Assembly (NCBI RefSeq): GCF_006345805.1
Contig: NW_021832273.1
Location: 99,733 to 163,732, forward strand
From: Octopus sinensis
Taxonomy: Eukaryota
Reading direction: 5' to 3'
DNA: 64,000 bases
A model generated the notes under the pieces. That model saw nothing but the letters and a program-made list of their open reading frames with translations, was not told the DNA's origin and did no database searches. Made by a program: the position numbers and the translations under genes. Numbering within the stretch: position 1 is the stretch's first letter; each line of letters starts with the position of its first letter. Shown piece by piece: positions 26,219 through 58,641 of this stretch.

Positions 26219-26229
26219 GAACTTGCAAA

Positions 26230-29189: not shown

Positions 29190-29201
29190 CATTATACTCT
29201 G

Positions 29202-29320
29202 CTAACTATTTTTTATTTACATAATAAAAAAATGGCATTCCGAAATTTAGTTGAAAATTTTTTTCTAGTCAAAAAAATTCGGAATAATGTTGTTTAACTA
29301 TATAAAACAAAAATAACTCG
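29202..29320. promoter_or_regulatory. Divergent H2A/H3 promoter fragment
   Basis: Left half matches the H2A upstream sequence (38860-38920), right half matches the H3 upstream sequence with TATATAAAA at 29299; TTCGGAAT motifs. Confidence 0.7.
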
Positions 29321-29332
29321 TCTGAATCAGTT

Positions 29333-30832
29333 GCATCGTCTGAATCGTCAGAAGGGCTGCGAAGAGCCCACAGACAAAAAGAATCCAGTTGCATGGTAAA
29401 GGAAAATAAAGAAAAAATGGTCAAGAATAAACAAAATCTCGCATCAATCAAAGCTTGCTCCAAAGTTCAAAAACGAACAGCGGCCAAGCCACAGCCCTTT
29501 TGCGAACCTGAATATCCCACCGAACATCCGAACCCTACTGTGGCTCAAAAACACAGTGAGACCCAATTCTATCAGACGACAACTGAGGTTAACAGCTCAA
29601 ACCTCACATATTCTCTGAGTATCGTAAACTCGGCACTTGGAAAGATCAAGAGGTTTAACCTCCTATCCAAGTCTCCAACTGCTTCCAAAGCCCGGATAAC
29701 CTTACAGAAGTCCGGCACCTTCATTCTAAAATTCAGTTCGCCAGAGGATGCTGCTGCGTTCAAAGCAGAGCTGACTCAATCGAATATGTTTGGCGAAGGC
29801 GGCCATAAACTTGCCTCAATAGCTGAGAAGGCCTCAGTCTTGGTCCTTAAAGGAATCCCTCATTGGATCTCGACAGAGGATCTTAACCTCCACTTGAGAG
29901 AAAGTCTAGAATCGGACTTCAAGTTCGAAAGATTCTCTCGCAATGGAACCGACATGCCTATCGGCAAACTCACGCTGGATTCCAGAGCCGAGGCCAACAC
30001 CCTCATCCGCTTTGGAATAACTGCGGGCTTCAGCCATATCCGCTGCGAATGGCACAAGCCCTCAGCAACGAGATGTTTCCGTTGCAATCAGTTTGGACAT
30101 ACGTCCTACAGATGCTCAGAAAAACTCCGTTGTCTCCTCTGCGGTAAAGAACACAGGCACCAAAACTGCCCGAGTTCCAAGCCGAAACCGAGTGTCCCAG
30201 CTGCAAAAACTTGCATTAATTGCAAGAACACTGGGCACTTGGCGTGCTACGGTGGATGTCCGTCTGCCAAAGCAGCAACAGCAGCCTCAAGGGCTGCGAA
30301 GAGCCCACAGACAAAAAGCCCAGTACGCTGGGTAAAAGCCGAACCGATAAAATCAGTTTGGACAAAAGCGGCTCCCCGAAGTCCGTCCAAAGTCGATGTC
30401 TCTACTCAGACGTCGCCGCCCCCCAGCACACTCACAAACTCGAAGACAACCACTAATGAGTGCCATAACTCGGAAGTGGTCCGCTCGGCTGTCCCTCATA
30501 AGAGGAGAAAAACCCACCGTGACAAAGCTTTGTCACAAAGAGGTCCCCACTCGGATCAGGACCTACACAACAGAGATTCCCAACTGGAATGCTTCCGCTG
30601 TTGTGTAGGAGCCCTGACCCTACTTGGAGTGGATATGGATATGCTGCAAGAGCTCCTGCTAGAAGGGAGCAATTCAGCAACATAGTCACCATTAACTCTG
30701 GCTCACGACAGATGAATTGGACGCAAGCTCAGAAGAGTTCAGTTGCCTTTGCATCAGTCTCGTCCTATCACCGTCCTTAATTCCTGTCACTTTCTCTTTC
30801 TCTGTTAATTACAATAAACTTCATTCATTCAT
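29333..30832 (+). mobile_element. ORF1-only family B element (430-aa ORF 29393-30685) inserted upstream of an H3 start
   Basis: 12-bp TSD TCTGAATCAGTT (29321-29332, 30833-30844); near-identical to the copy at 20412. Confidence 0.93.
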
Positions 30833-30863
30833 TCTGAATCAGTTCTGCCTGAAATAAAAAAAT

Positions 30864-30881
30864 ATGGCTAGTACCAAACAA
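30864..30881 (+). pseudogene. H3: H3 5' remnant (MASTKQ), truncated
   Basis: CTGAAATAAAAAAATATGGCTAG(T)ACCAAACAA matches the H3 5'UTR and start. Confidence 0.7.
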
Positions 30882-31584: not shown

Positions 31585-31636
31585 TTTCGGAATGATACTT
31601 TTTTATTATATAAATTTTTTCCCTTCAGAACTTGCA
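31585..31636 (+). promoter_or_regulatory. Probable H2B promoter ending in the GAACTTGCA target sequence
   Basis: TTCGGAATGATAC motif, TATATAAA at 31607, then TTCAGAACTTGCA; an H2B 3' fragment lies downstream at 32464. Confidence 0.65.
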
Positions 31637-32320
31637 GAATGTTTGATCAATTATTGCAGCCAATTTATCAACATCACGGTCAGAAACGTAGCCATCAGCC
31701 CACGTTTCGGCTTTTTTCTTCTCAATGGATTTATAGTTTAGCAGACACATCGCTGTCCAGCGGTCCAGGAATGTCTGCCTGGCTTGGATGGCCGATGATG
31801 GTATGACTGAGAGTCTAAGTGGAAGTAGACACTTGAAAACCGCGAATTGTATCAAACCCTCAGGCCGTCTTTGTGTTGGCTCAACCCTCTTATCCCCATA
31901 AGTGATACCGATTGACGTGCCTACAAATTGACATAAGTTAGGCTGTGTGTGCTCAAGACTCAGGTCCTTCTTGAAAAAGACAATCTGATCTATCTCGACT
32001 TCGCAGGCTACACGTAACGTCTTGATGTATTCGTACAGAAAAGCAACAGCTAGGCCTTCATCCCATGAACTCGAATTTTCTATTTTCTCAGCTAATGAAT
32101 ATATAGGTGAATTTTCCATGTACGTAGTGTTGATGGAAACACCAAGCAGACTGTTTGCTATGTCTCCCCAATCTTCCTCACTTGGGGGGTTGTGGAACAT
32201 CGTTACACCACGGCTGACGATCATGCCATTCTCGCGTGGTGTCCTTTTTGATTTTGCAGTTCCAAACTTGATTAAGTCATATTGACCAATATTCTCGGAC
32301 ATATTACTGATTTTGAACTG
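31637..32320 (-). other. Putative endogenous viral element: N-terminal half of a rhabdovirus-like nucleoprotein (ATG 32302)
   Basis: About 222 stop-free codons; FLYEYIKTLR ~ VSV N YLYGALKDIR and SDRDVDKLAAIIDQTF ~ NDSNYTKIVAAVDMFF in the same order (recalled sequence, by eye). Confidence 0.5.
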
Positions 32321-32460
32321 CCGAAGTCTACTGGGCCTCAAAAACAGAGTGAGACCCAATCCCATCAGACCCTCACATATTCCCTGACTATCGAAAACCC
32401 GACACTTGGAAAGATCAAGAGGTTTAACCTCCTATCCAAGTCGCCAACTGCCTCCAAAGC
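32321..32460 (+). mobile_element. Family B-like ORF1 5' fragment
   Basis: Matches the minus-strand copy near 1375-1535 ([19 protein letters not shown]). Confidence 0.85.
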
Positions 32461-32463
32461 TGC

Positions 32464-32562
32464 ATACAGACTGCAGTTCGTCTGATTCTTCCCGGTGAAT
32501 TGGCAAAACATGCTATTACAGAGGGTGCAAAGGCAGTTACTAAGTACACGAATACAAAATAA
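32464..32562 (+). pseudogene. H2B: H2B 3' fragment
   Basis: [32 protein letters not shown]. Confidence 0.9.
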
Positions 32563-32922: not shown

Positions 32923-35900
32923 GGGGGGAAAAATTTATTAGTTAAGGGAGGCAGTTAAAAACTAACTAAGTAGACCTTCGGCATCGCTGCCTTTTCAGTC
33001 TCCATCACACACACGCCTCCCTACACACAACCACAAGTTAAGACTTACCGCCTTACCTGCCATCCAGAAATAATCTTCTCTAGGACCTCAAGCACGTCAA
33101 CATGCTTATCCCTGTCCTCATAGAGGTACCAAGCGTGGACGCCATAGGTCAAGACGGGTAACACCATGGCGTTAAACACGCGGAACCAGGCACCTCTGCT
33201 CAAGCGGAAAGCACGCAACGCACCTAATCGCTGCATTGCACGCATTTTCGTACGTGCAATGTGATCATCAAACTTACCGGACGGCTTAAAGAGCACGCCC
33301 AAATAAGTCATCCGATCAACTGCAGCGATTGCTGACCCGCTCAGCAATAACCTAGGAACAAAATTAGTGTAACCCCTCGTCCTTTTACAGACTTTAAGGA
33401 CACTGCACTTGTCCGCGCACATTCTCAGGCCCCTACTCCCACACCAGTTTGCAAGTCCATCCACAGCAACCTGAAGCCTACGACACGCACACTCCGGTTT
33501 CATTGAGTGATCCCAGAGGATAATGTCGTCTGCATAGATTACCATTTCAGTACGAGCATTGACTGGCATAGGCGCAGTGGCCATAAACACATTGAATAGT
33601 GTCGGACTGAGCACAGAGCCCTGAGGGACCCCGCGAAGGACTGTTGCGACTTTAGAAAAGACCCCCTGATGCCGCACGACCTGTCTGCGAGATTCAAGAA
33701 ACCCCGACAGCCAGCGCCTTAGACACGGAGAAACCCCACACGTGGCAAGGGAACTCCGGAGGCCGTCGTGCCACACCGAGTCGAAGGCCTTTTCAATGTC
33801 GAGACTAACTAAAATACCGCATTCCCTTTTCTGGAGGGCGCTCTTCATACTAGACGACACCTTGTGAAGGCAGTCCCCGCATGAGCGGCCCTCCCTGAAG
33901 CCCCATTGGAACTCAGGGAGGGCGTCTGCCACCATCAGCTCCTCCAGGAGCCTTTGGTGCATAATTCTTTCTAGGATTTTAGATATCGCGGGGAGCAAGG
34001 AAATGGGCCTATATCCCCCGGGGACATCATGTGGCTTCCCGGGTTTTCCGATAAGAATCACCTCAGCTACTTTCCACCTGGAAGGAATCATCCCAAGTCG
34101 CAAGCTCCCGTTAAATAAAACCTTTAGCGCAGTGATTAACCGCGGCGGGGCCTTCTTAAAGATGGCCATCGGGATCCGATCCAAGCCCGCCGCGGTGTTC
34201 TTACTTCGGGAGATTGCTGCCAGAATCTCCGCTTCAGTAATTTCGCCTGCATCGTCCATTGATATATCCAGCTGGCAGCGCTTGTCCCACGACAATATCT
34301 GCTGGACAGTATCAAAGGACGATGTCTCTACGAACTGACTTCCGTCAGTTCCCGAGATGTCATTGAGATGGGCTGAAAGTATTTCAACCACCTCAACCGG
34401 GTCCGAAGCGAGGGTTCCATCAGAGCGTTTAAGGCGCACTGACTTAGCCCCCCTTCTCCCCGACAGGCTCTTCAACTGCTTCCAGAAGTCCGGAAAGCGA
34501 GGGTCCACCCTTCGGCAGGCCCTCTCCCACCGCGAACTTTCGAGTTCGCGGATTTCTCTTCGGACCTCCCTCTGAAGCCGGCTAATCCAGCCACGAAACC
34601 AAACGCGGTTCTCCTCGTAAATGCATTTGTCCCGTAGTCTGGATAGCCGGCGCTTGAACCTAATTTTATTTAAGATCCGGTGAGGGAGCGTGGAATGTGA
34701 CTGACCCTGCACTGAGTTCTGTTTGAAATTATCTCGCATGTAATCAGTCAGGGCAGCATTGATTCCATTATCAAGCGCCTCCAACTCACGTATGTTGGCG
34801 CAGGTATTCCCCACCAGAAGTGAGGGCAACCTGCTGGCCATGAAACTCTCCAGGTTAGCCCAGGAACCCACCCGGAGGTCAAAGTATCCTGGGACCCTTT
34901 GAGGAACTGGCTCACGGAGTTCGTGCAATAGAGGCAGATGGTCGCTCCCAATATCGGGCAATAAAATAGTTTTACTAACCCAATTTAGAAGACCGGGACT
35001 GATATGATATGATGTTGAGCATCATATCGGTTCTTCGCCAAGGATCTTCTTGGCCTCGGCAACGTTGTGTAGCATTTCATCTACACTGCAATTCATCTCC
35101 CTACAAAATTTTAATAGGGAAACGCATAATTGCACCGCAGGACTAATACTGTCCTGCGGTACACGCTCGCCAGGGGCTGAGTGCAATGGCATCTCCACGT
35201 ATGGAAGACGCCTTTTCAGCCCCAGGTTGTGCCGGACGGTGCCGCCGTTAGCCGCCTCGGAAGGCATTGCCGGCTTAGGCAACCAAGCGGACTCGGAAGC
35301 TTTCGCCTGCTTTGCCAACTTTGTCGGCGAAGGCTGCACCGACCCACACGCAGCATGGCTCACAGGTTCCACTGGCTTCGCCACCCTAGCGGGTTTGGAA
35401 GGTTTGGCCAGTATCGCCTGCTTGTCAGGTTTTGGGGCAGGGGGCGCGACGCGAGGCGGGCGCCTTACCTTTGGGATTACATCCCCACCTACCTTTCGGG
35501 TTGCCTCCTTAAACTTGGGGCAGCCTCTGAAGTTGGCAGTGTGTCCTAACTTACCGCAGTTGACACACTGCCTCTCCTTGGATGGTGAGGGGCACGTCTT
35601 GCGACCATGCTCTCCACCGCAGATAAGGCACTTGGCCTTATCCGGGCACTTCGTAGAGATGTGCCCGAACCCCTGACACCGAAAGCATTGGGTTGCTTTC
35701 GGGCGGGGCCAGGCAGCTCGGATCCTAATGTAGCCGATCCTGGTACCAAGAAGTACCAGGCGCTCGGCTTCTGCAGGAGATCCCAGTGTTAGCTCCGCCA
35801 CTTCAAGAGGGCGATTACCCTGCTTGAAGCGTGCAATGGCAGAGGCACTGGGGTACTCCTGCTGCAGGTGATCTAGGAGGTCATTATCCTCGAAGTCCCG

Positions 35901-36756
35901 AGGAACCCCGAGGAGGAGGACACTTACCTTTCTTACCTTACGTTCGATCCTGACTAGGCGATGCATGCCAGGACCGAACGGATTTGACTTCTCCAACTCC
36001 CCTTTGAAGTTGGAGAAGTCATCCTCCTTCTCCCAACCAAGCAGGAATTGGGTGGGCTCCCTCTTCAGGACTCTATACAGCTTTGAAGGCTGGATAGAGT
36101 CCAAGGTACCTAGGATCTTTACGACCGAGGCCTTCCCACTTGTAGGGAGGACCTCAAGTCGTGCCACAGCACCAAAGGTAATTCTACCCCCGGCGCCAGT
36201 GGTCTTCTTTGGGTGTGCATCCACCTGAGCGGACGCACACCCAGTACCTAAAACATTAGGGGTTGGACGGCCAGCAACACGTTTCGGCTTCCCCACCGTG
36301 TGCCAACCGTCCTCGGGGGGAACCTTATTTCCTGCCGGACCCACCGGAGCGGGCCCAGGAGACGACACCCTGTTAGCATTAAATGACTTAAGTTGGCTGG
36401 GTTTGGCACCACTAGACAAACCGCAAACACGTGGCGAACCAGCATGCTGTGCGGTTGTCGTGGCTACCAAACAATTAGTACCTGTTGCAGCTGCTGCTCC
36501 CCCGACACCAGCCAAAGGGGGAGCAGAGGGAGAAGAGTCTCCAGTGAGTGCTGAACCCATCTGGGAGGGTCCAGGCTTCGACCTCCTGCTTTGACCTAAA
36601 GAATTAAAAACACCACTAGAATAGCCGAAGCACGTGGCGGTGAACCACGGCTCCGGCAGTTCATCGTAGTGGCACACTGAACCGTCTTGTCCTCCGGGGA
36701 GTGCGAAGCGGGAACGCCTCCACTTCGACATAGCCTTCTTAGTGCAGACAGTTGTC
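32923..36756 (-). mobile_element. Family A LINE, inverted, full ORF1, endonuclease part of ORF2 deleted
   Basis: ORFs 35022-36731 and 33045-34961 nearly identical to the copy at 39915; deletion junction near 35005. Confidence 0.93.
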
Positions 36757-36846
36757 TCTTTGTAGCGACGGAAACATTTTTTGTTTTAATGGGAGCTCTT
36801 TTTTGTCCTTTTGTGCTAACTTTAGGTGCCATTATTAACAAAATTT
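36757..36846 (-). pseudogene. H2B: H2B 5'UTR plus about 25 codons (ATG 36832) fused to the family A leader
   Basis: MAPKVSTKGQKRAPIKTKNVSVATK followed directly by [15 protein letters not shown]. Confidence 0.9.
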
Positions 36847-38237
36847 TAACATAGATTAAAGTATTTTACATTTTTTTAGTTTTTTTTAATAAATATATAT
36901 TTATGCCCGTTTTTATGATATCGAAAATTTAAAACCAAAAAAATACTGAACAAATTTAAATTACTTATATATATCAAAAAAAAGGTTTTATTTTTTAAAA
37001 TTCGTTCAAATTCAATCATTTGTAACCTCTCTACATAGCCAATCATTGAACATTTGAAGAAAAAGGCAGAATAATTGGCATGTATAAATCTGGAAAAACA
37101 TACAGAGAAATACAAGATATCACGAAAAAGTATGCTTGGCACGATATTGCAAATTATCAAAAGCTATTCAAATAAGTGCTTGACGGACAAAAAAGTTGGG
37201 TCTGGTTGACCATTCATTGCTCAATCGTCAAAAATATTTTAAATTAAAGAGGCTTGAAAAGTGGATGTCAATTTCAACTGTTTTTAATTTACTAAAACAT
37301 TTACAGAAAAAAAGGGAAATCAGTAACAGCTCAAACAATAAGAAATACCACGAAAAAATTGGTCTGAATGCATATCCGCCCACGAAAAGACCACTTCTTA
37401 CCAAAAACCCTAAACTTCAATGATTAAAGCTATGCCAAACATGCAATATGCTCTCAAAATATTTCGGGAGCGAGTTATTTTAAGTGATGAAAGTAAATTT
37501 AATATGTAAAATAGTGATGTAAGAACTTTAGTATGGAGAAATCGCAAGGAAAAATATTTAACAAGCAATCTTACAAAAACAATAAAATTCGGTAAAGGAA
37601 CTATCATGAACTATCATGCCATAATCAATATTGGATTCATTAATTTGGTTTTGATAAAAGAGAAGATTGGTGGAGCTTTGTATGTTAACATATTAACGAA
37701 TAATATGATCTCATTTCTGAACAAAATCGAACATAAAGATCCTAGTTTCCAACAAGACAATGATCTGAAACATACTTCGGCAATAGCAAAGAGCTTTTTT
37801 CAAGTAAATAATATCGAATTACTACTATGGCCAACACAAAGCCCAGATTTAAACCCTATAGAGAATGTTTGGGCCTTTATTAAAGAAAAAATCAAAGGAA
37901 GAGAATTTTTGAAAAAGGAACATTTATTTGCAAAAATATCATCCATTTGGAATTAACTCAAAATAGAATACGCAAAAAGTCTTATTAATAGCATGCCAGG
38001 CCGAATACTAGATGTAATTAGAGCTAATGGAGGACATAATAGATATTAAATAAATTTGTTCATTTTTGGGTTCTGAATTATGAATGAATGGAAAACTGTA
38101 TAAATATAATATTTTTTAGACAAAAATAAAGCAAAACTTTATTTAATTTTTTTAAATCAATAGAAGTTATTTTTTAAATATTGTTTCATAGTAAATTCAT
38201 GAGAAAATGCTTTTTCAGTTTTTATTTTTGTTCACTG
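36847..38237 (+). mobile_element. Tc1/mariner transposon, left end lost, frameshifted
   Basis: EEKGRIIGM helix-turn-helix start, FQQDNDLKH, SPDLNPIENVW (DD34E); right TIR ends ...GTTCACTG followed by TA. Confidence 0.88.
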
Positions 38238-38488: not shown

Positions 38489-38848
38489 TTAGGAAGTTGT
38501 TTTAGGAGTTTCTGCAGTTTTGCGAATCATAAATCCACCAGATGAAATAATAGCTTTCTGAGTTAATTCTTTTAATTCGTCGTCATTTCCAATTGCAACG
38601 ACAATGTGACGTGGTTTAATTCTTCTTTTTCCACATTTTACTGCTGTATTTCCAGCAAGTTCAAGCATTTCAGCCACAGCATATTCCAATACTGCGCACA
38701 TATATACTGCGGCAGGAATTCCTACTCGCATTCGGGTTTCATGACGGAGACACCGGTGAATGCGTCCAACTGGAAACTGTAACCCGGCCCGAACGGATTT
38801 GCTTTTAGCCTTTGACCGTACTTTTCCTCCTTTTCCTCTTGAAGACAT
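38489..38848 (-). CDS. H2A: Histone H2A, divergent
   Basis: [36 protein letters not shown]. Confidence 0.95.
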
Positions 38849-39003
38849 TATACTCTGCTAATTATTTTTTATTTACATAATAAAAAAAATGGCATTCCGA
38901 AATTTAGTTGAAAATTTTTTTCGGAATGGTCCTTTTGAAAAAATTTGGCAATGATACTTTTTGTGCATAGGTTGAAAATAGTGTTCATTTAGAGAATTTT
39001 TCA
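38849..39003. promoter_or_regulatory. 155-bp bidirectional H2A/H4 promoter
   Basis: Lies between divergent ATGs; inverted ATTCCGAA and TTCGGAAT motifs; repeated at 51961-52113. Confidence 0.8.
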
Positions 39004-39312
39004 ATGTCTGGACGTGGTAAAGGTGGCAAAGGAGGAAAGAGTGGTGCAAAACGATTTCGAAAGATATTAATTGACAATATACAAGGAATTACTAAGCCAG
39101 CAATAAGAAGACTATGTCGAAGAGGGGGTGTTCGAAGAATTTCTGGAAAAATTTACGAGGAGACACGTTCTGTCCTTAAGATTTTTATTGAGCAAACTGT
39201 TCGTGATTGTATTTCCTATACTGAACATGCCAAAAGAAAAACTGTTATCGCAATGGACGTTGTTAATGCCTTGAAACGTCAAGGTAGGACAATTTACGGA
39301 TTTGGTGGATAA
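39004..39312 (+). CDS. H4: Histone H4, divergent
   Basis: SGRGKGGK...[14 protein letters not shown]...TEHAKRKTV...GFGG; AATAAA downstream. Confidence 0.97.
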
Positions 39313-39580
39313 ATTATACATAATTTTTTTAATAAAATACATTGATATTCCTTACAAATTAACCAGATAAAAATTAGCAATTTCATAAATACTAACTAGC
39401 TACCAAACGACGGTGAAATACTACGATTGCTTTTTTAATTGGTAAGAAATCTTGTTGAAATAACAAAAAGTATATTTATACAGTAAATTAGAGTTATATC
39501 GTTTGAAAAATTTATTTTTTTCTAATATTTTATTTTTTTGCATCTGTTTATAATTATGTTTATTTAGAGAATTATTTGCG

Positions 39581-39800
39581 AGTGGACCCCAGAGCTCCGG
39601 CCAATCGGGCAATGGACGATTATTTCTCCGAACATGGAGACAAATATCGTGGAAGACCTAGATCCACTCTTCCGACAGTTCTTGAAAGGGATCTCAAACT
39701 TCATGACAAAAGTTTCAAAAACTGGGACGACCTAGAATCTTTACGGGATCTCGCCCGCAACAGAAGGGCATGGACAAGGATGGTCCAGAAGATTGTTTCG
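39581..39800 (+). mobile_element. RTE-like C-terminal fragment abutting the H3 5'UTR (also 52692-52911)
   Basis: PANRAMDDYF...RGRPRSTLPTVLERDLK aligns to PANFAMEKYF...RGLPRITLPEVLDADLK in ORF 14061. Confidence 0.78.
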
Positions 39801-39830
39801 CTGAAACTGTCCTGTCTGAAATAATAAAAT

Positions 39831-39914
39831 ATGGCTAGAACTAAACAAACTGCTCGAAAATCTACTGGAGCAAAAGTTCCAAGGAAACAATTGTCTGCAA
39901 AATCTGCTCGCAAG
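39831..39914 (+). pseudogene. H3: H3 N-terminal tail (Met to K27) fused to family A (also 52942-53024 and 58558-58641)
   Basis: Identical to the start of intact H3 at 49236 up to GCTCGCAAG. Confidence 0.93.
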
Positions 39915-44378: not shown

Positions 44379-44403
44379 GGAAAACTTGCAAATTTTGTGG
44401 ATA

Positions 44404-45184: not shown

Positions 45185-45261
45185 ATTTTCGGAATGATAC
45201 TTTTTCTCGAAAAAATTCGGAATAATGTTGTTTAACTATATAAAACAAAAATAACTAGCCT
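45185..45261 (+). promoter_or_regulatory. H3 promoter (also ~58445-58528 and ~63880-63950)
   Basis: Two TTCGGAAT motifs and TATATAAAA; uninterrupted version precedes the H3 ATG at 58558. Confidence 0.78.
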
Positions 45262-48200
45262 ATGTCGAAGTGGAGGTGCTCCGACGGTCCAGATGGTTCA
45301 AGGAGAGCCCTCCAAAGTTGAAGAATCCACCGAACCCCCGAGGTCTGACCTTAACAGCTCAGGCCTCACATTCACTCTGAGCATTAATAACCCGGCACTT
45401 GGAAAGATCAAGAGGTTTAACCTCCTATCCAAGTCGCCAACTGCCTCCAAAGCACGGATTACATTACAACGCTCAGGCTCCTTCACTCTTGAGTTCAGGA
45501 ACCCCGGAGATGCTGATGCATTCTCGGCTGAGCTTGCAAGATTGAACCCGTTTGGCGAAGGCGGCCATAAACTTGCCTTAGTTACTCCGCAAAAGTCAGC
45601 ACTAGTCCTAAAGGGGATTCCGCGATGGATCTCAATCGGGACCTAGAGCTGCACCTGAAGGAAACCCTCAGTTCGGTGTTCGTTCTCGAGCGATTCACGC
45701 GAGATGGTCTCAACATCCCAGTTGCTAAGCTGACGCTTGACTCACGAGCTGAAGCTACTTCTTTGATCCGCACCGGAATCACAGCTGGTTTCTGCCTTAT
45801 CACCTGTGAATGGTTCAGACCTCCTGTCGTCCGATGTTTCCATTGTCAGAGATTCGGACACCTGTCCCGTAACTGTCAAGAAAAAGCCCGGTGCTTATAC
45901 TGCGGCAAGGACCACGACCGAAGGGAATGCCCAGGCAGCAAACAAAGTCTAGTGGAGCCCTGCGGTCGGCATTGTATCAATTGTGACCGCCCCGGCCACC
46001 TCGCTTCGTATGGTGGATGCCCGACGGCCAAAGCTGCAACAGCAGCTAAATGGGCCGCCCGCGCAGAAGCAATGCCTCGGTCTCCTAACCCAACCCGCAT
46101 GGTAATGGTAAAAGCTAAGCCGGTCACGCCTATCTGGAAAGTACGGCCGCTAATAACCCCGTGTGTGGCGGACGCCCATACCCAGACGACGCAAGTCGTT
46201 GAGGTTGGTGCGCAGAGCATGCAGGCCCCTGTCGCCGAGGCTGTGAAACCGAGGCCCGTCAGCCCAATAAGGAACGGTACTCAGCAGGCCAAAACGCAGG
46301 CGAAGGTAGACTCTCACAACAAGGATGCTCTGTTGGAATTTTACCAACGCTGTGTCGACGCACTGCTGAAACTGGGAGTCAAACCCAAGAAGCTAGAAGA
46401 GCTCCTATCAGAGAGGAGCTCGCCAGCAAAATGACCACGCCACTAAAAATCATCGCTGTGAATGCCCGATCTGTCAAGAGACGGCACCTCGACTTCGTTG
46501 AGATGGTAAACAGCGGCCATCCTGACTTAATCGTCGTCAACGAGTCTAAGCTGAAAGAAGGTCAATGCTTCGAATTGCCAGGATACTGCTCCCTTGACCT
46601 GAAATGGAGAAATAACTCTACGCCTGGGACTGGGACGACTATCTACTACCTGCAAAATCTCAAGACACGTAACCTCAAGACTATCGAACGGAACCTATGC
46701 GAATTTATCTCGCTAGAGATTAAAACCCAGCGCTTTTGGTTAAAAGTGGGCGGAATATATTGCAAAAACCTTGCTCCATGCATCGGTCTTATCGAAGACT
46801 TCTTTGTCAGCTCAAATCATTGCCTCCTCATCGGTGATCTAAACTCCAAACACACGGCATTTGGTTGTCGCGTGACCAATCGGGACGGCCGGTTACTTGA
46901 AAGAGCGGCAGGTAGGCTAGACGTCTGTGTCCGCACCTCGAAAGCCCGGAACCACCGCTCCCCATTCGGCTGGGACAACCTTTGCGTAGCACTGAGCTCT
47001 CAATCAGTCGCGAATCTTATGGGAGAACCAATAGTACTCGACGATATTGGGAGCGACCACCTGCCAATGCAGGTCTGTGTCCACGTCTCGGTAGACACCC
47101 AAATCCGTTGCCCACCACGATACACCCTTTCGAACATCAACTGGGCGCACTACCGTTATGCTCTGAACTTGTTCTTTCGCAACAACGTACGCCCAGGCAG
47201 CTATCAATCTACCTCGGACATCGACAACTCGGGCGCCGAATTGACGGACTTCATGCGACTCTACTTGGAAGCCCACGCTAGGAGGGTGCGCCCAACTAGC
47301 AAGGGCATTACACATCAAAACCCCAAACTTCTCCAACTTCTGGGCGAAAAGAAACGCCTGCGAAACAAGCTCAAACGCTGTGCCGACCCAACGGACCAAG
47401 GTACCCTAAGGTCGGAAATCTCTCTGCTCAACCACAAAATTGAACTCACAAGAAAGAAAGATCTTGAGAGGATGTGGAAGAAGGCCTGCTCTGGTCTTAA
47501 TCACAGGAACCCAAACTTCTGGATAGCCTACAACAGACTCTCTAATCATCTCGTGAACTCTCCGGCACCAGAATTATCGAACTCAGCTGGAATGCCTGCG
47601 TCGGTGGAGGAAATCCCCAACATATTTGCTGATCACCTGGACCGTCCTCTGCCGGACCATGAGGATCGCTGGGGAAACTCACATGCCAGTCCTATAGACC
47701 AAGCAGACTCCCTATCTGTTGATCATCACCCAATCACCGCCGCTGAGGTGACCTGGGCCATCCTCTCGGCGAGGGACAACGCACCGGGGCATGACATGCT
47801 ACCAATGAAAATGTTCAAAGAAGGCCCTCCGGAACTGTCTGAGTTTTTGGCACGCCTCTTCTCGGCTAGTCTTCGCTGGAGCCACGTTCCAAGTGCCTGG
47901 AAAGTCGCCGAAATCCGGATGATCAAGAAACCTGCAAAACCAGCTAACCTTGCCAGCAGCTATCGACCCATCAGTCTAATACCAACGATCTCGAGGCTTA
48001 TGGAAAAAATTATGACCAAACGCTTCGACTCCTTCGCTGAGCAGAAATGCGTGCTTCTGCCCCAGCAGTGGGGCTTCCGCTCGGGGCGCAGCTGCGCCGA
48101 TTGTTTTCTGATTCTCCAATCGATGGCTTTGAAAGCAATGGAGTTCAACGAAACTTTATCTTGCATCTGCCTTGACATCTCTAAAGCATTCGACAGCGTG

Positions 48201-49203
48201 TACCACCCAGACCTATTGGACAGGGTTCGCAGTTGTGAGCCAACGAGAGAGGCATTTCTCTGGCTGAATTGCTTTCTTTCTAACCGTATCTCCTTTGTGT
48301 CCCAGTCGGGCTTCCACTCCAGAGATATACATCTCCGAAGGGGTGTCCCGCAGGGATCCAGTCTCAGCCCGCTGCTGTTCAACCTTGTGATGAGCAGCTT
48401 CCCTTCCTTCCCCAATCCGCGGACAACTTTCCTCTTGTACGCTGATGACGTCCTCATTATGGATATTTCAAAAAGCCCCGCACTCTCGGAGCACCGTCTT
48501 TCCAGCTACATCGGAATGATAGAGACCTGGTGTCGGGGTAAACAACTATCCATTGCTATGGACAAGTCGGCGTACCTTGAAATTAACTCACGGCGCAAAT
48601 CGAGGCAAGAGCCTGAGATTCTCAGAAGACTTCCCCGCCCGAGCCACATTCGCTATCTGGGCTTGACGGTAGACTCTAACTCGGAGTACTTACTGCACAT
48701 CACCCAAAAAAGGAAAAAGGCCGTTGCGGCCCTTCGCTTCCTGAGGGGTATGCATTTGGCCCCCGACACTTTTCTGTTTGTCTTTCGCGCGACGATTCTC
48801 CCAAGTCTCTTGTATGGGATGGAGGCGTGGCACTATTCAAACCAATTCGGAAAAATATTGAAAAAATGTGAGAAGATCCGTCGCTATGCGTTAAAGCTAG
48901 CGTACAGATTGGATCTACGCGCCCCGCTACCCAACTGGGCAGAGGAGAAATCTCCACTAATCGAGAAAGTCATCCTTGATTCCATCCGAACTTTTCGTCG
49001 GCGGTCTCAGGTGACCGATCTTTTCGTGGATCGCGTCTGAAATTCAATCAGAGAGTGACTCTTCAAAAACCCGGCTCATATATTCCCTTAGGACGAATCT
49101 CGGCAGAGCTCGACTGTCTTCGCAGTCGTCTCGTTTAACCTCGTCCAACCTTTTTACTTAGTCTCTGTTTTACTTACAATAAAACTTTCCATTCCATTCC
49201 ATT
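45262..49203 (+). mobile_element. Family C LINE, full length: ORF1 45293-46434 (frameshift near 45640), ORF2 46431-49040 intact (869 aa), (TTCCA)n tail
   Basis: Splits ACTAGCCT^GAAACTG of the H3 5' region with an apparent 3-bp TSD CCT. Confidence 0.95.
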
Positions 49204-49235
49204 CCTGAAACTGTCCTGTCTGAAATAAAAAAAAT

Positions 49236-49646
49236 ATGGCTAGAACTAAACAAACTGCTCGAAAATCTACTGGAGCAAAAGTTCCAAGGAAACAATTGTC
49301 TGCAAAATCTGCTCGCAAGTCTGTTTCACAATTTGGAGGGGTAAAGAAACCTCATCGATTTCGACCTGGAGTTGTTGCAATGCGAGAAATTAGACGATAT
49401 CAAAAGAGCACTGATTTGTTACTACGAAAACTTCCATTCCAGAGACTCGTGAGAGAAACCGCTCAGTTTATCAAAACTGATTTGCGTTTTCAATCGTCAG
49501 CGATTGTCGCTCTCCAAGAAGCGGCAGAGAGTTACCTAGTTGGAATTTTTGAAGATAGTAATTTGTGCGCAATTCACGGAAAAAGAGTAACTATAATGCC
49601 AAACGATATGCATTTATCGAGAAGAATTCGAGGTGAAAAAACATAA
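49236..49646 (+). CDS. H3: Histone H3, intact but divergent
   Basis: [12 protein letters not shown]...KPHRFRPG...RFQSSA...HGKRVTIM. Confidence 0.97.
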
Positions 49647-49875: not shown

Positions 49876-51349
49876 TAGTGAACAAAAATAAAAACTGAAC
49901 ATGCTTTTTCTTATAAATTTACAATTGGACAATATTGCAAATATGTCTCAAATTTATTTTTAACATAGATTAAAGTATTTTACATTTTTTTAGTTTTTTT
50001 AATAAATATATATTTATGCCCTTTTTTATGATATCGAAAATTTAAAACCAAAAAAACTGAACAAATTTAAATTACTTATATATATCAAAAAAAAGGTTTT
50101 ATTTTTTAAAATTCGTTCAAATTCAATCATTTGTAACCTCTCTACATAGCCAATCATTGAACATTTGAAGAAAAAGGCAGAATAATTGGCATGTATAAAT
50201 CTGGAAAAACATACAGAGAAATACAAGATATCACGAAAAAGTATGCTTGGCACGATATTGCAAATTATCAAAAGCTATTCAAATAAGTGCTTGACGGACA
50301 AAAAAGTTGGGTCTGGTTGACCATTCATTGCTCAATCGTCAAAAATATTTTAAATTAAAGAGGCTTGAAAAGTGGATGTCAATTTCAACTGTTTTTAATT
50401 TACTAAAACATTTACAGAAAAAAAGGGAAATCAGTAACAGCTCAAACAATAAGAAATACCACGAAAAAATTGGTCTGAATGCATATCCGCCCACGAAAAG
50501 ACCACTTCTTACCAAAAACCCTAAACTTCAATGATTAAAGCTATGCCAAACATGCAATATGCTCTCAAAATATTTCGGGAGCGAGTTATTTTAAGTGATG
50601 AAAGTAAATTTAATATGTAAAATAGTGATGTAAGAACTTTAGTATGGAGAAATCGCAAGGAAAAATATTTAACAAGCAATCTTACAAAAACAATAAAATT
50701 CGGTAAAGGAACTATCATGAACTATCATGCCATAATCAATATTGGATTCATTAATTTGGTTTTGATAAAAGAGAAGATTGGTGGAGCTTTGTATGTTAAC
50801 ATATTAACGAATAATATGATCTCATTTCTGAACAAAATCGAACATAAAGATCCTAGTTTCCAACAAGACAATGATCTGAAACATACTTCGGCAATAGCAA
50901 AGAGCTTTTTTCAAGTAAATAATATCGAATTACTACTATGGCCAACACAAAGCCCAGATTTAAACCCTATAGAGAATGTTTGGGCCTTTATTAAAGAAAA
51001 AATCAAAGGAAGAGAATTTTTGAAAAAGGAACATTTATTTGCAAAAATATCATCCATTTGGAATTAACTCAAAATAGAATACGCAAAAAGTCTTATTAAT
51101 AGCATGCCAGGCCGAATACTAGATGTAATTAGAGCTAATGGAGGACATAATAGATATTAAATAAATTTGTTCATTTTTTGGGTTCTGAATTATGAATGAA
51201 TGGAAAACTGTATAAATATAATATTTTTTAGACAAAAATAAAGCAAAACTTTATTTAATTTTTTTAAATCAATAGAAGTTATTTTTTAAATATTGTTTCA
51301 TAGTAAATTCATGAGAAAATGCTTTTTCAGTTTTTATTTTTGTTCACTG
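49876..51349 (+). mobile_element. Tc1/mariner transposon with both TIRs, frameshifted transposase
   Basis: TA-flanked imperfect ~45-bp TIRs (C/T)AGTGAACAAAAATAAAAACTGAA; DD34E motifs. Confidence 0.92.
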
Positions 51350-52422: not shown

Positions 52423-53024
52423 ATTATACATAATTTTTTTAATAAAATACATTGATATTCCTTACAAATTAACCAGATAAAAATTAGCAATTTCATAAAT
52501 TACTAACTAGCTACCAAACGACGGTGAAATACTACGATTGCTTTTTTAATTGGTAAGAAATCTTGTTGAAATAACAAAAAGTATATTTATACAGTAAATT
52601 AGAGTTATATCGTTTGAAAAATTTATTTTTTTCTAATATTTTATTTTTTTGCATCTGTTTATAATTATGTTTATTTAGAGAATTATTTGCGAGTGGACCC
52701 CAGAGCTCCGGCCAATCGGGCAATGGACGATTATTTCTCCGAACATGGAGACAAATATCGTGGAAGACCTAGATCCACTCTTCCGACAGTTCTTGAAAGG
52801 GATCTCAAACTTCATGACAAAAGTTTCAAAAACTGGGACGACCTAGAATCTTTACGGGATCTCGCCCGCAACAGAAGGGCATGGACAAGGATGGTCCAGA
52901 AGATTGTTTCGCTGAAACTGTCCTGTCTGAAATAATAAAATATGGCTAGAACTAAACAAACTGCTCGAAAATCTACTGGAGCAAAAGTTCCAAGGAAACA
53001 ATTGTCTGCAAAATCTGCTCGCAA

Positions 53025-56000
53025 TTGTCTGCACTAAGAAGACTATGCAGAAGTGGAGGTGTTCCCGCCTCGCTCTCCCAGAAGGACAAGACGTTCAGTG
53101 TGCCACTACGATGAATTGCCGGAGCCGTGTTCACCGCCACGCGCTTCCGGCTATTCTAGTGGTGTCTTTAATTTTCTAGCGAAAAGCAGGAAGGAGAAGT
53201 CGAAGCCTGGACCCTCCCAGGTGGGTTCAGCACTCACTGGAGACACTTCTTCCTCTGCTCCCCCTATGGCTGGTGTCGGGGGAGCTGCAGGTGCAACTGG
53301 TTCTGATCGTTTGGTATCCACCACAACCGCACAGCATGCTGGTTCGCCACGTGTTTGCGGTTTGTCTAGTGGTACCAAACCCAGCCTAGGTAAGTCAATT
53401 AATGCCAACGGGTGTCGTCTCCTGAGGCCGTCCCGGTGGGTACGGCAGGAAATAAGGTTGCCCTTGAGGACGGTTGGTACACGGTGGGGAAACCCAAACT
53501 TGCGGCTGGCCGTCCAACCCCCCCTAATGTTGTAGGTACTGGGTGTGTGTCGATCAGGCGGATGCACACCCAAAGAAGACCACTGGCGCCGGGGGCAGAA
53601 TACTTCGGTGCTGTGGTACTTGAGGTCCTCCCTAAAGTGGAAGCTTCGCAGCGGATAAAGATTCTGTACGGCACCTAACGACTTAGGGAGTCCTCCTGCT
53701 CAAGGGCTGCTCGGTCATACGGATAGTCACCCCAAGAGAGTCTGGCTCCTGGAACGAGCCCGAGGAACTTTCTTCCCTGGCGGCGGGTGGGTGGTGAGGC
53801 CAAAGATCTGTAGTGTATCTAGAGTGGGAAGGCCTCGGTCATAAGATCTTATTACGTTAGACTTATCCGCCTTCAAAGCTGTATAGAGTCCTGAAGAGGG
53901 AGCCCACCCAATTCCTGCTTGGGTGGGAGAAGGAGGATGACTTCTCCAATTTCAAAGGGAGCTGGAAAGTCAAATCCGTTCGGTCCTGGCATGCATCGGC
54001 TTGTCAGGATCGAACGTAGGTAAGTAAGGTAAGTGTCCTCCTCCTCGGGGTTCCTCGGGACTTCGAGGATAATGACCTCCTAGGTCATCTGCAGCAGGAG
54101 TACCCCAGTGCCTCTGCCATTGCACGCTTCAAGCAGGGTAATCGCCCTCTTGAAGTGGTGGAGATTACACTGGGATCTCCTGCAGAAGCTGAGCGCCTGG
54201 TACTTCTTGGTACCAGGATCGGCTACATTAGGATGAGAGCTGCCTGGCCCCGCCCGAAAGCCACCCAATGCTTCGGTGTGCAGGGGTTCGGGCACATCTC
54301 CACAAAGTGCCCGGATAAGGCGAAGTGCCTTATTTGCGGTGGGGAGCATGGTCGCAAGACGTGCCCCTCACCATCCAAGGAGAGGCAGTGTGTCAACTGT
54401 GGTAAGTTGGGACACACTGCCAACTTCAGAGGTTGCCCCAAGTTCAAGGAGGCAACCCGAAAGGTAGGTGGGGATGTAATCCCAATAGTAAGTCGCCCGC
54501 GTCGCGTCGCGCGCCCTGCGCCAAAACCTGGCAAGCAGGCGATACTGGCCAAACCTTCCAAATCCGTTGGGTGGCGAAGACAGTGGAACCTGTGAGCCAT
54601 GCTACGTGTGGGTCGGTGCAGCCTTCGCCGACAAAGTTGGCAAAGCAGGTGAAAGCTTCCGAGTCCGCTTGGTTGCCTAAGCCGGCAATGCCTTCTGAGG
54701 CGGCTAACGGCGGCGCCGTCCGGCACAACCTGGGGCTGAAAAGGCGTCCTCCATACGTGGAGATGCCATTGCACTCAGCCCCTGGCGAGCGTGTACCGCA
54801 GGACAGTATTAGTCCTGCGGTGCAATTATGCGTTTCCCTATTAAAATTTTGTAGGGAGATGAATTGCAGTGTAGAGGAAATGCTACACTGCAACGTTGCC
54901 GAGGCCAAGAAGATCCTTGGCGAAGAACCGATATGATGCTCAACATCATATCGGTGAACGCGCGTTCCTTGGAAGGAAAAAGGACGCCGTTCAGAGGATG
55001 TTGGCCACCACGAGTGCGGACATTCTGGTGGTCAACGAAACGAAGGTAAAGGGGGGTCCGTACGTAGTTGATGGCTACAACTGTCGTCACATACCCTGGA
55101 AACAGGGGTCAATATGTGGCACAGGAACTAGCCTCTTCTACAAGCCCTACCTTGCCTTGCAGAGTCCAGGTTATGTTCATGTAGCTTGTGTGAATTCCTC
55201 CAAGTGAGAATTCGCAAAGGCGAGTTAACATTTTACCTAGGTGGAAAGTACTCGAAGAACTTTACGGCGTGCTCCTGGCACGTACGGGAGTTCTTTGAAA
55301 AGCATCCGAAGGCCATGGTTTTTGGGGACCTGAATGCCAAGCATCAAGATCTTGGTTTCAGGGTAACCACTCGCATGGTTTGGCTCTGAAGACGCTGGTT
55401 GAAGACCTCGGGCTGGAATCCGGACTTCGAGCGAGCCAAACCACGTCGACACGAGGGGAGGACGTGACTGGCTAGGGCTTGCTCTGGTCAGTCCCGGTCT
55501 TCTAATTGGGTTAGTAAAACTATTTTATTGTCCGATATTGGGAGCGACCATCTGCCTCTATTGCACGAACTCCGTGAGCCAGTTCCTCAAAGGGTCCCAG
55601 GATACTTTGACCTCCGGTGGGTTCCTGGGCTAACCTGGAGAGTTTCATGGCCAGCAGGTTGCCCTCACTTCTGGTGGGGAATACCTGCGCCAACATACGT
55701 GAGTTGGAGGCGCTTGATAATGGAATCAATGCTGCCCTGACTGATTACATGCGAGATAATTTCAAACAAAACTCAGTGCAGGGTCAGGCACATTCCACGC
55801 TCCCTCACCGGATCTTAAATAAAATTAGGTTCAAGCGCCGGCTATCCAGACTACGGGACAAATGCGTTTACGAGGAAACCGTGTTTGGTTTCGTGGCTGG
55901 ATTAGCCGGCTTCAGAGGGAGATCCGAAGAGAAATCCGCGAACTCGAAAGTTCGCGGTGGGAGAGGGCCTGCCGAAGGGTGGACCCTCGCTTTCCGGACT

Positions 56001-57642
56001 TCTGGAAGCAGTTGAAGAGCCTGTCGGGGAGAAGGGGGGCTAAGTCAGTGCGCCTTAAACGCTCTGATGGAACCCTCGCTTCGGACCCGGTTGAGGTGGT
56101 TGAAATACTTTCAGCCCATCTCAATGGCATCTCGGGAACTGACGGAAGTCAGTTCGTAGAGACATCGTCCTTTGATACTGTCCAGCAGATATTGTCGTGG
56201 GACAAGCGCTGCCAGCTGGGCATATCAAGGAACGATGCAGGCGAAATTACTGAAGCGGAGATTCTGGCAGCAATCTCCCGAAGTAAGAACACCGCGGCGG
56301 GTTTGGATCGGATCCCGATGGCCATCTTTAAGAAGGCCCCGCCGCGGTTAATCTCTGCACTAAAGGTCTTATTTAACGGGAGCTTGCGACTTGGGATGAT
56401 TCCCTCCAGGTGAAAGTGGCTGAGGTATCCTTATCGGAAAGCCCGGGAAGCCACATGATGTCCCCGGGGGATATAGGCCCATTTCCTTGCTCCCCGCAAT
56501 ATCTAAAATCCTAGAAAGAATTATGCACCAAAGGCTCCTGGAGGAGCTGATGGTTGCAGACGCCCTCCCTGAGTTCCAATGGGGCTTCAGGAGGGCGCTC
56601 ATGCGGGGACTGCCTTCACAAGGTGTCGTCTGGTATGAAGAACCCTCCAGAAAAGGGAATGCGGTATTTTAGTTAGTCTCGACATTGAAAAGGCCTTCGA
56701 CTCGGTGTGGCACGACGGCCTCCGGAGTTCCTTGCCACGTGTGGGGTTTCTCCGTGTCTAAGGCGCTGGCTGTCGGGGTTTCTTGAATCTCGCAGGCAGG
56801 TCGTGCGGCATCAGGGGGTCTTTTCTAAAGTCGCAACAGTCCTTCGCGGGGTCCCTCAGGGCTCTGTGCTCAGTCCGACACTATTCATGTGTTTATGGCC
56901 ACTGCGCCTATGCAGTCAATGCTCGTACTGAAATGGTAATCTATGCAGACGACATTATCCTCTGGGATCACTCAATGAAACCGGAGTGTGCGTGTCGTAG
57001 GCTTCAGGTTGCTGTGGATGGACTTGCAAACTGGTGTGGGAGTAGGGGTCTGAGAATGTGCGCGGACAAGTGCAGTGTCCTTAAAGTCTGTAAAAGGACG
57101 AGGGGTTACACTAATTTTGTTCCTAGGTTATTGCTGAGCGGGTCAGCAATCGCTGCAGTTGATCGGATGACTTATTTGGGCGTGCTCTTAAGCCGTCCGG
57201 TAAGTTTGATGATCACATTGCACGTACGAAAATGCGTGCAATGCAGCGATTAGGTGCGTTGCGTGCTTTCCGCTTGAGCAGAGGTGCCTGGTTCCGCGTG
57301 TTTAACGCCATGGTGTTACCCGTCTTGACCTATGGCGTCCACGCTTGGTACCTCTATGAGGACAGGGATAAGCATGTTGACGTGCTTAAAAAAGTAAGAA
57401 GACGAGCCATAAGGCTAGCCTATGGCTTAGGATTCCGCTGAGCTCTCCGACGCCCAGGAATCATCTCTCAAAGGCCTCTCTGAGGTCCTAGAGAAGATTA
57501 TTTCTGGATGGCAGGTAAGGCGGTAAGTCTTAACCTGTGGTTGTGTGTAGGGAGCGTGTGTGATGGAGACTGAAAAGGCAGCGATGCCGAAGGTCTACTT
57601 AGTTAGTTTTTAACTCCCTTAACTAATAATGTTTTTTCCCCC
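53025..57642 (+). mobile_element. Family A LINE copy with many indels
   Basis: Collinear with 39915-44378. Confidence 0.92.
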
Positions 57643-57666
57643 AAAAACTTGCAAATTTTGTGGATA

Positions 57667-58034
57667 ATGGCACCTAAAGTTAGCACAAAGGGACAAAAAA
57701 GAGCTCCTATAAAAAGCAAAAATGTTTCTGTTTCTGTTGCTACAAAGAAAAAAAAGAAAAGGAAAACTTTTTCCATATATCTTATGAAAATTTTAAAGAC
57801 AGTACATAATCAACTTGGGATGTCAAAGAAGGCTATGATGGCTATGGACAGTTTCACATTTGATGTTTATGACAAAATAAAACCGAAGGCATCAAATCTA
57901 GTCTATCAGAATTCGAAGGCCATTACCTCACGTGAAATACAGACTGCAGTTCGTCTGATTCTTCCGGTGAATTGGCAAAACATGCTATTACAGAGGGTGC
58001 AAAGGCAGTTACTAAGTACACGAATACAAAATAA
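57667..58034 (+). CDS. H2B: Histone H2B copy with apparent indels
   Basis: Collinear with 44404-44770. Confidence 0.75.
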
Positions 58035-58641
58035 CACTTTAAAAATAATTGTTTTATTTATTTGTTCTTTAAATAACTATTTCAACAATCCAAATGCAAC
58101 TAGTAATTGTCCCTTTGGCATTCGAGATCTCCGCAGCCTTTGTCCCGCAAACATCCAAGTTCTTAAACACATCTGCCTCCTTATCGCTCGGAGAAACATG
58201 GATGCAAGCGAATCTTCTTGCTAAGACAGAGGATCTCTGGTACAATCATGCGCGGCAACACGCAAGCTATTCTTTTGACCGGATCTGATCGTTCTCTTTC
58301 TTGTTTTTTCTTTAATTAGTTCACTAGTAATTTAGTCTGTAATCTCGAAAAATTCATAAATTTAAGCAATAGTTACAATTATTTGATGGTGCTGATAAAA
58401 TATTATTTTAAAAATATTTAATTTTTTAATTTTAAAAATGATGAGCAAAAAATTTTCGGAATGATACTTTTTTTCGAAAAAATTCGGAATAATGTTGTTT
58501 AACTATATAAAACAAAAATAACTAGCCTGAAACTGTCCTGTCTGAAATAAAAAAAATATGGCTAGAACTAAACAAACTGCTCGAAAATCTACTGGAGCAA
58601 AAGTTCCAAGGAAACAATTGTCTGCAAAATCTGCTCGCAAG

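Follow-up and report, generated by a model that had tools for sequence, protein, structure and literature searches.

Retrotransposon insertions at a fixed position of histone core promoters in the genome of Octopus sinensis

We analysed a 64,000-nucleotide stretch (the window) at the end of Octopus sinensis contig VCDQ01009797.1 (assembly GCA_006345805.1), in which histone genes are interrupted near their starts by long interspersed nuclear elements (LINEs), that is, retrotransposons lacking long terminal repeats (the non-LTR class). Blocks of 50–55% GC content are interleaved in the window with DNA of 30% GC, and tblastn with canonical histones located genes for H2A on the minus strand and for H4, H3 and H2B on the plus strand, together with many fragments. 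The encoded proteins are diverged from the canonical ones (H4 about 80%, H3 about 78% and H2A about 59% identical), and the H2A carries the NCBI name 'histone H2A-beta, sperm-like [Octopus sinensis]'. The window was compared with 12 further non-redundant stretches of the same genome (given L numbers), all centred on histone genes and gathered by look-ups with the H3, H4 and H2A of the window and with P0006, a near-identical representative of the H2A cluster. The undisturbed histone unit, seen in L008, has the order H2A(−) H4(+) H2B(+) H3(+) and spans about 5.1 kb. AATAAA is present 3′ of the histone stop codons, as in a polyadenylated cluster, and a search of the cluster genes for the histone 3′ stem-loop found none.

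Each histone promoter contains one to three TTCGGAAT boxes, and all except that of H4 contain a TATA box. The half-palindromic TTCGGAAT(G/A)AT boxes are common to all four histone promoters, keep a fixed spacing to the TATA box and to the insertion site, and presumably serve a transcription factor of the histone cluster as its binding site. In the window they lie at 58455/58483, 45188/45216, 38901 (minus strand), 38920, 31586, 29278 and 29244 (minus strand). The native type b H3 promoter and leader (58455–58557, plus strand) provides an empty-target reference, with boxes at 58455 and 58483, TATATAAA at 58504 and the ATG at 58558; the insertion site at 58526/58527 (AGC/CTGAAAC, the slash marking the bond) is 44 nt from the box and 23 nt from the TATA box. 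The native divergent H2A/H4 promoter (38849–39003, both strands) is the reference for the H2A site TTAG/CAGAG on the minus strand and the H4 site GTTC/ATTTAGAG on the plus strand.

The inserted elements form groups labelled A/A′, B and C/D, D being a 5′-truncated C and C1 a 1.45 kb derivative of C that holds only the first open reading frame (ORF1). Their large ORFs consist of a first frame with a CCHC motif and a second frame (ORF2) with an apurinic-type endonuclease (APE) and a reverse transcriptase (RT). The domains PF14529/PF03372 and PF00078 were found in A, A′, B and D, as in APE-type LINEs; Pfam gave no match to a restriction-like endonuclease in the element ORFs and the APE domain is N-terminal, so the elements are not of the CRE/NeSL type. 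A PDB sequence search aimed at placing the endonuclease near R1Bm or TRAS1 returned RT matches only, to L1 and R2 structures. At the DNA level A and A′ are 89% identical, whereas the ORF2 products of A and B share 32% identity over their full length and those of B and D 59%. In a database of 5.8 billion proteins the best outside matches of A are unnamed and only 26–30% identical, which points to a single lineage, old and diversified, with poor representation elsewhere. This lineage was recently active: intact ORF2s of 893, 885 and 869 aa are present, and its copies share 97–99% identity in A and 98% in C1. The tails consist of (CATTC)n, (CATT)n, (TTCG)n or (TTGA)n. It is probable, in our judgement, that the features described here are insertions of an old and diversified APE-type non-LTR lineage, comprising A/A′, B, C/D and their deletion derivatives, that is specialised on histone core promoters.

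The insertions in the window are best read copy by copy. Element B (45262–49204, plus strand) has a split first frame (45293–45646 and 45625–46434, with CCHC), an intact ORF2 (46431–49040, 869 aa) and a (CATTC)3 tail. It is a clean insertion at the H3-b site, with junctions at 45259/45260 and 49204/49205; the flanks AACTAGCCT/ and /CTGAAACTG give a 2 bp target-site duplication (TSD; CT), and the host promoter upstream (45188–45261) is identical to the copy at 58504. Directly 3′ of B follow the H3 leader and an intact H3 gene (49205–49646, plus strand; gene 49236–49646, 136 aa). A C1 copy (29333–30834, plus strand; ORF1 29393–30685, (CATT)n tail) occupies the promoter of an H3 variant (H3v; box 29278, TATA box 29299), flanked by a TSD of 10–11 bp, (C)TGAATCAGTT, at 29322/3–29332 and 30835–30844. 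The H3v leader and first exon lie 3′ of it at 30835–30880, and the native H3v leader was read in L001. Element D (26336–29189, minus strand; ORF2 27015–29081 with APE and RT) is inserted in an H2A gene and has a 12 bp TSD, CAGAGTATAATG, at 29190–29201 on the promoter side (box 29244; TATGTAAA, first T 29223) and at 26324–26335 on the gene side (H2A ATG 26326). The promoter side reads TATGTAAATAAAAAATAGTTAG, CAGAGTATAATG and, past the junction, CCGTTGGG; the gene side reads TTCAATTCATT up to the junction and then CAGAGTATAATG and TCTTCAAG.

Two H2B-a sites are also associated with inserts. The promoter at 31586–31639 (plus strand; box 31586, TATATAAA 31607, regular site 31626/31627, TTC/AGAAC) keeps 10–13 nt of native leader (AGAACTTGCAGAA) and departs from it at about 31637–31640, as expected for the promoter-side copy of a 10–13 bp TSD. 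Behind it lie an insert of 823 bp (31640–32463) and then H2B codons 95–126. This insert, present also in L001 at 8572–9394, stands in place of H2B codons 1–94 and is accompanied by an opposite-strand ORF of 246 aa (31625–32365), for which, as for other small ORFs, Pfam gave nothing informative. The other H2B-a site contains a tandem array of five elements (16300–26240, plus strand): A′ (16300–20399, intact ORF2 of 885 aa), C1 (20413–21885), C2 (21898–23880), X (23894–24153) and Y (24167–26217). Each element is followed by AGAACTTGCAAA(G), with repeats of 12–13 bp between the five, and the tails abut AGAACTTGC at 20400, 21886, 23881, 24154 and 26218, where the H2B leader starts (ATG 26241). The intact or near-identical copies (A′, C1) are promoter-proximal and the degraded ones (X, Y) gene-proximal, an order that would result if new insertions always depend on a native promoter lying upstream, though as a single array it is a slight indication.

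Copies of A and A′ carry pieces of histone genes at their 5′ ends. The A′ of the array is preceded by the H4 leader (from AATTTTTCC) and H4 codons 1–49 (16137–16299, plus strand), in frame with the first reading frame of A′ (ORF 16150–17634, 494 aa); the 5′ boundary of this fusion recurs in L021. The fusion ORF includes the CCHC motif and the C-terminal two thirds of the first frame of A′, and similar fusions occur in L002 and L001. At 39801–44380 (plus strand) the H3 leader and codons 1–28 (39801–39914) are joined to A (39915–44380; ORF2 41577–44258, 893 aa), whose 3′ end, TTTTTTCCCCCCGG, abuts the H2B-b site /AAAACTTGC at 44381; on its 5′ side a native stretch of about 550 bp that contains the H2B promoter is deleted. 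This copy has duplicates at 52912–57643 and 58527–63088. A minus-strand copy (32923–36852; A 32923–36754, intact ORF1 of 569 aa) carries the H2B leader and codons 1–27 (36755–36852). It is off-site, has replaced an H3 gene and ends 3′ within the H2B–H3 spacer. The TSDs, the tails, the 5′ truncations (X, Y, D and a 19 nt tail of B), the target deletions and the tandem array show that the elements were inserted by target-primed reverse transcription.

In a junction census we recorded what precedes each histone start and what follows the 3′ end of each element, and collapsed obvious segmental duplicates. Over the window and the 12 other loci, all histone-centred, 26 of the 33 distinct element 3′ junctions fell on one bond per gene and 7 elsewhere, so that most copies occupy the same position of a repeated host gene, a regularity far beyond chance. 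The on-site junctions differ from one another by element family, tail or target variant. The bonds are TTC/AGAACTTGC, TCC/AAAACTTGC and TCG/GAACATAC in H2B, AGG/TCTGAAAT, AGC/CTGAAAC and TTT/TCTGAAAT in H3, GTC/TGAATCAG (GTC/TGAATC) in H3v, TAG/CAGAG in H2A and TTC/ATTTAGAG in H4. Family A by itself gives junctions in H2B, H3, H4 and H2A, B-like and C-like elements with four tail repeats give the others, and C1 enters the H2B-a, H3v and an altered H2B-b site; the same near-identical subfamilies thus use eight or more local sequences that are unrelated to each other. Nearly all insertions are in sense orientation. The seven off-site junctions comprise two in leaders (one antisense), two in promoters and three in other DNA.

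The first (bottom-strand) nick is on one bond per gene, and the second falls 2–13 bp, usually 6–13 bp, downstream. The promoter-side junctions, scattered at first sight, are mostly at site +2 to +13 once the TSDs, which measure 12 bp for D in H2A, 10–11 bp for C1 in H3v, 2 bp for B in H3 and 6 bp for C1 in L019, are recognised. From the first T of a TATA-like box to the junction the distance is 20–24 nt in 8 of 11 promoter cases, namely in H2B-a/b/c, H3-a/b/c, H3v and H2A; from a TTCGGAAT-type box it is 41–45 nt in all nine regular promoter variants. The distance from junction to ATG varies from 9 to 31 nt. A first-pass annotation of the window had measured, at four junctions, from the first T of the TATA-like box to the G of a weak CWGAR consensus, and its arithmetic agrees with the sequence: 21 nt for H2B (TATATAAAT, 31607 to 31628), 25 nt for H3 (58504 to 58529), 25 nt for H3v (29299 to 29324) and 24 nt for H2A on the minus strand (29223 to 29199). 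The regularity that it proposed is real; the true first nick, however, lies 1–3 nt 5′ of the G, giving 20–24 nt. Two of its junctions, those of D in H2A and C1 in H3v, are insertions with TSDs, whereas 58529 and 31628 carry none in that copy. The promoter at 58504 runs unbroken into the H3 leader, and the same positions as 58529 and 31628 are used in paralogous copies. The spacing from the TATA box is kept in the eight cases at 20–24 nt, but H4 and two off-site junctions lack a good TATA box at that distance and yet lie 41–44 nt from a TTCGGAAT box.

Several H3 leaders (58527–58557; L003 14380; L001 12860) have the (G/C)TCTGAA motif twice, through an internal duplication of 15 nt (CTGAAACTGTCCTGTCTGAAAT); other alleles have it once. 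The duplication may be the footprint of a past insertion and loss at the site.

The clearest separation of position from local sequence comes from a pair of paralogues in L019. In the empty one, the H2B-b promoter is followed at the usual site by a 19 nt tail of B and then by an H3 promoter (TATATGAGATTTTTTCACTCC/ACTTTCCATTCCATTCCAT AACGTTG). In the filled one, a C1 copy 98% identical to the C1s of the window sits exactly after CACTCC with a 6 bp TSD, ACTTTC; the flanks of the two paralogues are 99% and 96.5% identical. Downstream of the filled site lies ACTTTCCATTCC, with no CWGAR, no native leader, no purine patch and no initiator. Because this C1 sits at the usual H2B-b bond without the native leader downstream, the bond appears to be set by the upstream promoter. 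Taken together, the distances and this exchange of downstream sequence amount to a constant spacing between insertion and promoter element, whatever the local sequence; the at least eight local sequences used per subfamily and the foreign downstream sequence in L019 do not fit one conserved cleavage-site sequence. These comparisons support the view that targeting is positional, set by the upstream promoter and not by CWGAR or the initiator. The first-pass annotation had already suggested positional targeting despite differing targets, which is borne out here; against its further idea, that the elements may nick the initiator, speaks the C1 insertion in L019.

If position is decisive, it has to be asked what the elements measure from. 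They might be tethered to the TATA-binding protein (TBP) or, as the first-pass annotation proposed, to the RNA polymerase II (Pol II) preinitiation complex, with the cut at a constant spacing from the TATA box. This would agree with the TATA-like box 20–24 nt upstream of the eight sites and with the upstream anchoring seen in L019, and both nicks would bracket the region where Pol II promoters generally open and start. We nevertheless regard it as unlikely. The H4 site, with three or four events, has no good TATA box at that distance but is still 41–44 nt after a TTCGGAAT-type box, and two off-site promoter junctions (A in the H3-c promoter of L002 and a tail of B in the H3 type-2 promoter of L019) have no TATA box at −20 to −24 but are 41 and 44 nt past a TTCGGAAT box. 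Moreover, throughout the 13 histone-centred stretches promoter insertions were seen in histone promoters only; TBP or the preinitiation complex, as a general factor, does not by itself account for this restriction in the loci sampled, whereas a histone-specific box or factor would. On these sequence comparisons, the TTCGGAAT box or the factor that binds it appears no less likely to be the anchor than TBP or the preinitiation complex. An APE endonuclease reading a degenerate local motif (CWGAR or the initiator), with the TATA spacing a mere consequence of promoter architecture, is a still less probable explanation, one that we find hard to sustain. All native targets do have a purine patch (GAA or GAG) 1–6 nt past the nick, the bond is nearly invariant within each gene, and one non-histone junction of A, in L009, begins /TGAGATC. 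But C[AT]GA[AG] occurs 40 times (25 + 15) in the native 5.1 kb unit, of which only four sites are used, so that CWGAR cannot specify the site; there is no common sequence at −12 to −1, the H4 site lacks the C and has the motif offset by 3 nt, and in L019 C1 entered the usual bond with ACTTTCCATTCC downstream.

Two explanations that dispense with targeting altogether seem to us very improbable. The junctions could be the 5′ ends of histone mRNAs, formed when an RT copying histone mRNA, or primed at an R-loop, jumped to element RNA at the cap. The element 5′ ends are indeed mosaics of histone mRNA 5′ pieces (H3 codons 1–28, H2B codons 1–27, H4 codons 1–49), the region of the ORF1 start derives from H4 codons 33–46, leaders start at the junction, and GG often precedes the leader after A. 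However, clean insertions are flanked by TSDs and retain the promoter upstream, the downstream genes keep their native genomic context past the mRNA, GG is also found at a non-histone junction and hence belongs to the 3′ end of A, and an antisense insertion in L001 is joined to untranscribed promoter DNA. The first four of these observations led us to reject a jump at the cap. Alternatively, a few chance insertions could have been spread by unequal crossing-over, gene conversion or misassembly of the repetitive cluster; a 5.4 kb A-carrying unit is present three times at about 98% identity, near-identical junctions occur in L002 and L003 and in the window and L019, and the contigs are rich in repeats. 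Against such spread, the junctions remaining after collapse are still unlike one another in element family, in tail repeat, in additional bases and in the gene or variant targeted, the TSDs vary in sequence and length, and an empty site is preserved.

Our own reading, which we offer as tentative, is that this LINE lineage reads promoter architecture: it would be recruited by a TTCGGAAT-box factor (or the preinitiation complex), nick at a measured distance downstream and so capture a strong, possibly germline-active Pol II promoter, while its 3′ end, where AATAAA lies some 20 nt from the junction, may stand in for the TATA box, keeping the displaced gene running and recreating the target. Apart from this wider reading, we think it probable that the nick position is measured from the upstream promoter architecture, with local sequence at most fine-tuning it; the measuring agent may be an element protein that itself binds the box/TATA region or a factor sitting there. 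The element would thereby come to lie a few bases from the histone transcription start and be transcribed from the histone promoter, transcription beginning a few bases before the element; the start is probably near the nick and inside the TSD. Such transcription would account for the histone leaders and first codons found at the 5′ ends of elements. The 5′ ends of A are always the H3 leader with codons 1–28 or the H2B leader with codons 1–27, A′ has H4 codons 1–49 in frame with ORF1, the sequence surrounding the ORF1 start (GCAnTAAGAAGnCTATGTCGAAGnGGnGG) comes, in A and B, from H4 codons 33–46, and L001 holds an H2B–H3–H4 mosaic; these ends fit long-term transcription from histone promoters with template switching or joining at microhomologies. 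In L001 (18440–18700, minus strand), the mosaic 5′ leader of a B copy consists of an H2B-like variant start, H3 codons 13–23 and the H4-derived segment, duplicated once, which suggests repeated template switching among histone mRNAs. At the other end, the 3′ terminus of A (AATAA(A/TG)TTTTTCCCCCC, 44351–44380) nearly copies the H2B-a core promoter (TATAAATTTTTTCCCTTC, 31609–31626), and all B- and C-type 3′ ends have ACAATAAA 16–27 nt before the junction. The polyadenylation signal of the elements could double as a substitute TATA box for the displaced histone gene.

Several points weigh against the explanation that we prefer, a lineage specialised on histone core promoters that measures from the upstream promoter. 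The L019 exchange is a single locus (n = 1). Fixed mutual spacing of box, TATA box and transcription start makes the anchor inseparable at regular sites, and the case for the box over the TATA box consists of H4 and the two off-site events. Three further octamers of the window that resemble the box, at 8367, 10454 and 25629, are free of insertions, and the octamer alone is therefore insufficient. No DNA-binding domain besides the CCHC motif was detected by Pfam in the element ORFs. Start estimates from the retro-copied chimeras are inconsistent across H3, H3v, H2B and H4, ranging from −2 to +10: relative to the nick, the chimera 5′ ends are at +8/9 for H2B (window 36850, L005), +8 for H4 (window 16137, L021), +2 to +10 for H3 (window 39801–3, L013, L020) and −2 for H3v (29337). 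The junction census, finally, covers histone-centred loci on repeat-rich contigs; exact look-ups with the ORF2s of B and A′, aimed at copies away from histone clusters, gave no entry in an index that does not list element ORFs as genes.

Some further features were recorded at these loci. Two candidate families were rejected: an RT-like segment at 39560–39800 ('E'), taken as an extra family ending at the H3 site, is really native H4–H2B spacer (99.6% identical in L008), the boundary at 39800 being that of the 550 bp target deletion with CT microhomology; and a family 'F' ending in AAATAAAAAAATTTCC before H4 in L008 was not counted, as an intact H4 promoter in L009 has this sequence upstream of it and the arrangement may be a deletion. 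Y of the array holds a nested AT-rich insertion of about 1.9 kb (24270–26160) with ATATGACC-like repeat arrays at both ends and minus-strand ORFs at 24564–25175 and 25342–25902, possibly a DNA transposon. A fragment of a Tc1/mariner transposase (DLKHTS and LLWPTQSPDLNPIENVW) lies at 37606–37956 and 50717–51067, inside a duplicated 13 kb block. Retroelement remains unrelated to A–C are present at 7640–10728 (a PHD-finger ORF followed by an RT ORF) and at 14061–15607 (minus strand, RT fragment), and an extra C copy at 1–1651 (minus strand) is outside any histone gene, its 5′ end abutting a (TTGA)n tail. The histone set itself is odd for an animal (window 38489–39312, 44404–44767 and 49236–49646; L008; L014). 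L014, a contig from run ERR12370323, has a 75%-identical H2A within a compact four-histone cluster of 2.1 kb, and P0008, a protein with 72% identity that is recorded for the ant Vollenhovia emeryi, may be contamination.

Site-specific LINEs are natural models for programmable RNA-templated gene insertion. So far, aiming of this kind has meant either the reading of one target sequence (R2, R1) or passage with TFIIIB to RNA polymerase III (Pol III) genes (TRE5-A, Ty3). If our reading is true, the octopus elements would be the first non-LTR retrotransposons tethered to Pol II promoters and the first with a protein-coding gene family as target; they would represent a third solution to the lack of a promoter of their own, also if a histone-specific factor does the aiming, and protein-coding genes would join the list of safe multicopy targets. 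With eight natural target variants, TSDs and an empty site, they would also offer a tractable system for asking whether an endonuclease is positioned by a ruler or by a motif.

The closest parallels in mode of targeting are TRE5-A of Dictyostelium, an APE-type LINE, and Ty3, both of which target Pol III genes through TFIIIB. Ty3 is described as integrating in a narrow window upstream of Pol III genes (10.1101/2021.07.27.453949). The octopus elements resemble them in that insertion keeps a constant spacing to a promoter landmark and depends little on local sequence, but differ in that their targets are TATA-containing Pol II histone genes and not Pol III genes, and in that they insert between TATA box and ATG, so that the promoter is captured; for TRE5-A and Ty3 the partner is known (TFIIIB). 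Positional targeting is already known for a LINE in TRE5-A and for an LTR element in Ty3 of yeast, in both cases at Pol III genes. The literature searched contained no histone-targeting LINE and neither histone genes nor Pol II core promoters as targets.

Target-specific LINEs are known from rRNA, snRNA, tRNA and spliced-leader genes, transposons, microsatellites and telomeres (PMC4640811). Like R1, R2 and Tx1, the octopus lineage seems, in the histone-centred loci, confined to a multicopy gene family, has precise 3′ and variable 5′ junctions, forms tandem and nested copies and would depend on host transcription. Unlike them, it does not read one conserved target, a single subfamily using at least eight unrelated local sequences, and histone genes and core promoters are absent from the listed targets of such elements. 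SLACS, CZAR, CRE and NeSL-1 reside in spliced-leader genes, a few bases from where a multicopy gene transcribed by Pol II begins, and use the host promoter. The octopus elements are also found near the start of multicopy Pol II genes; however, SLACS, CZAR, CRE and NeSL-1 have a restriction-like endonuclease and a defined exon sequence as target, whereas those of the octopus have an APE and share no target sequence. Finally, L1-type chimeric retrocopies such as U6-L1 likewise have 5′ ends with pieces of abundant cellular RNA joined at microhomologies, but in the octopus elements the captured pieces are a stable part of the element 5′ end and come from the targeted genes themselves.

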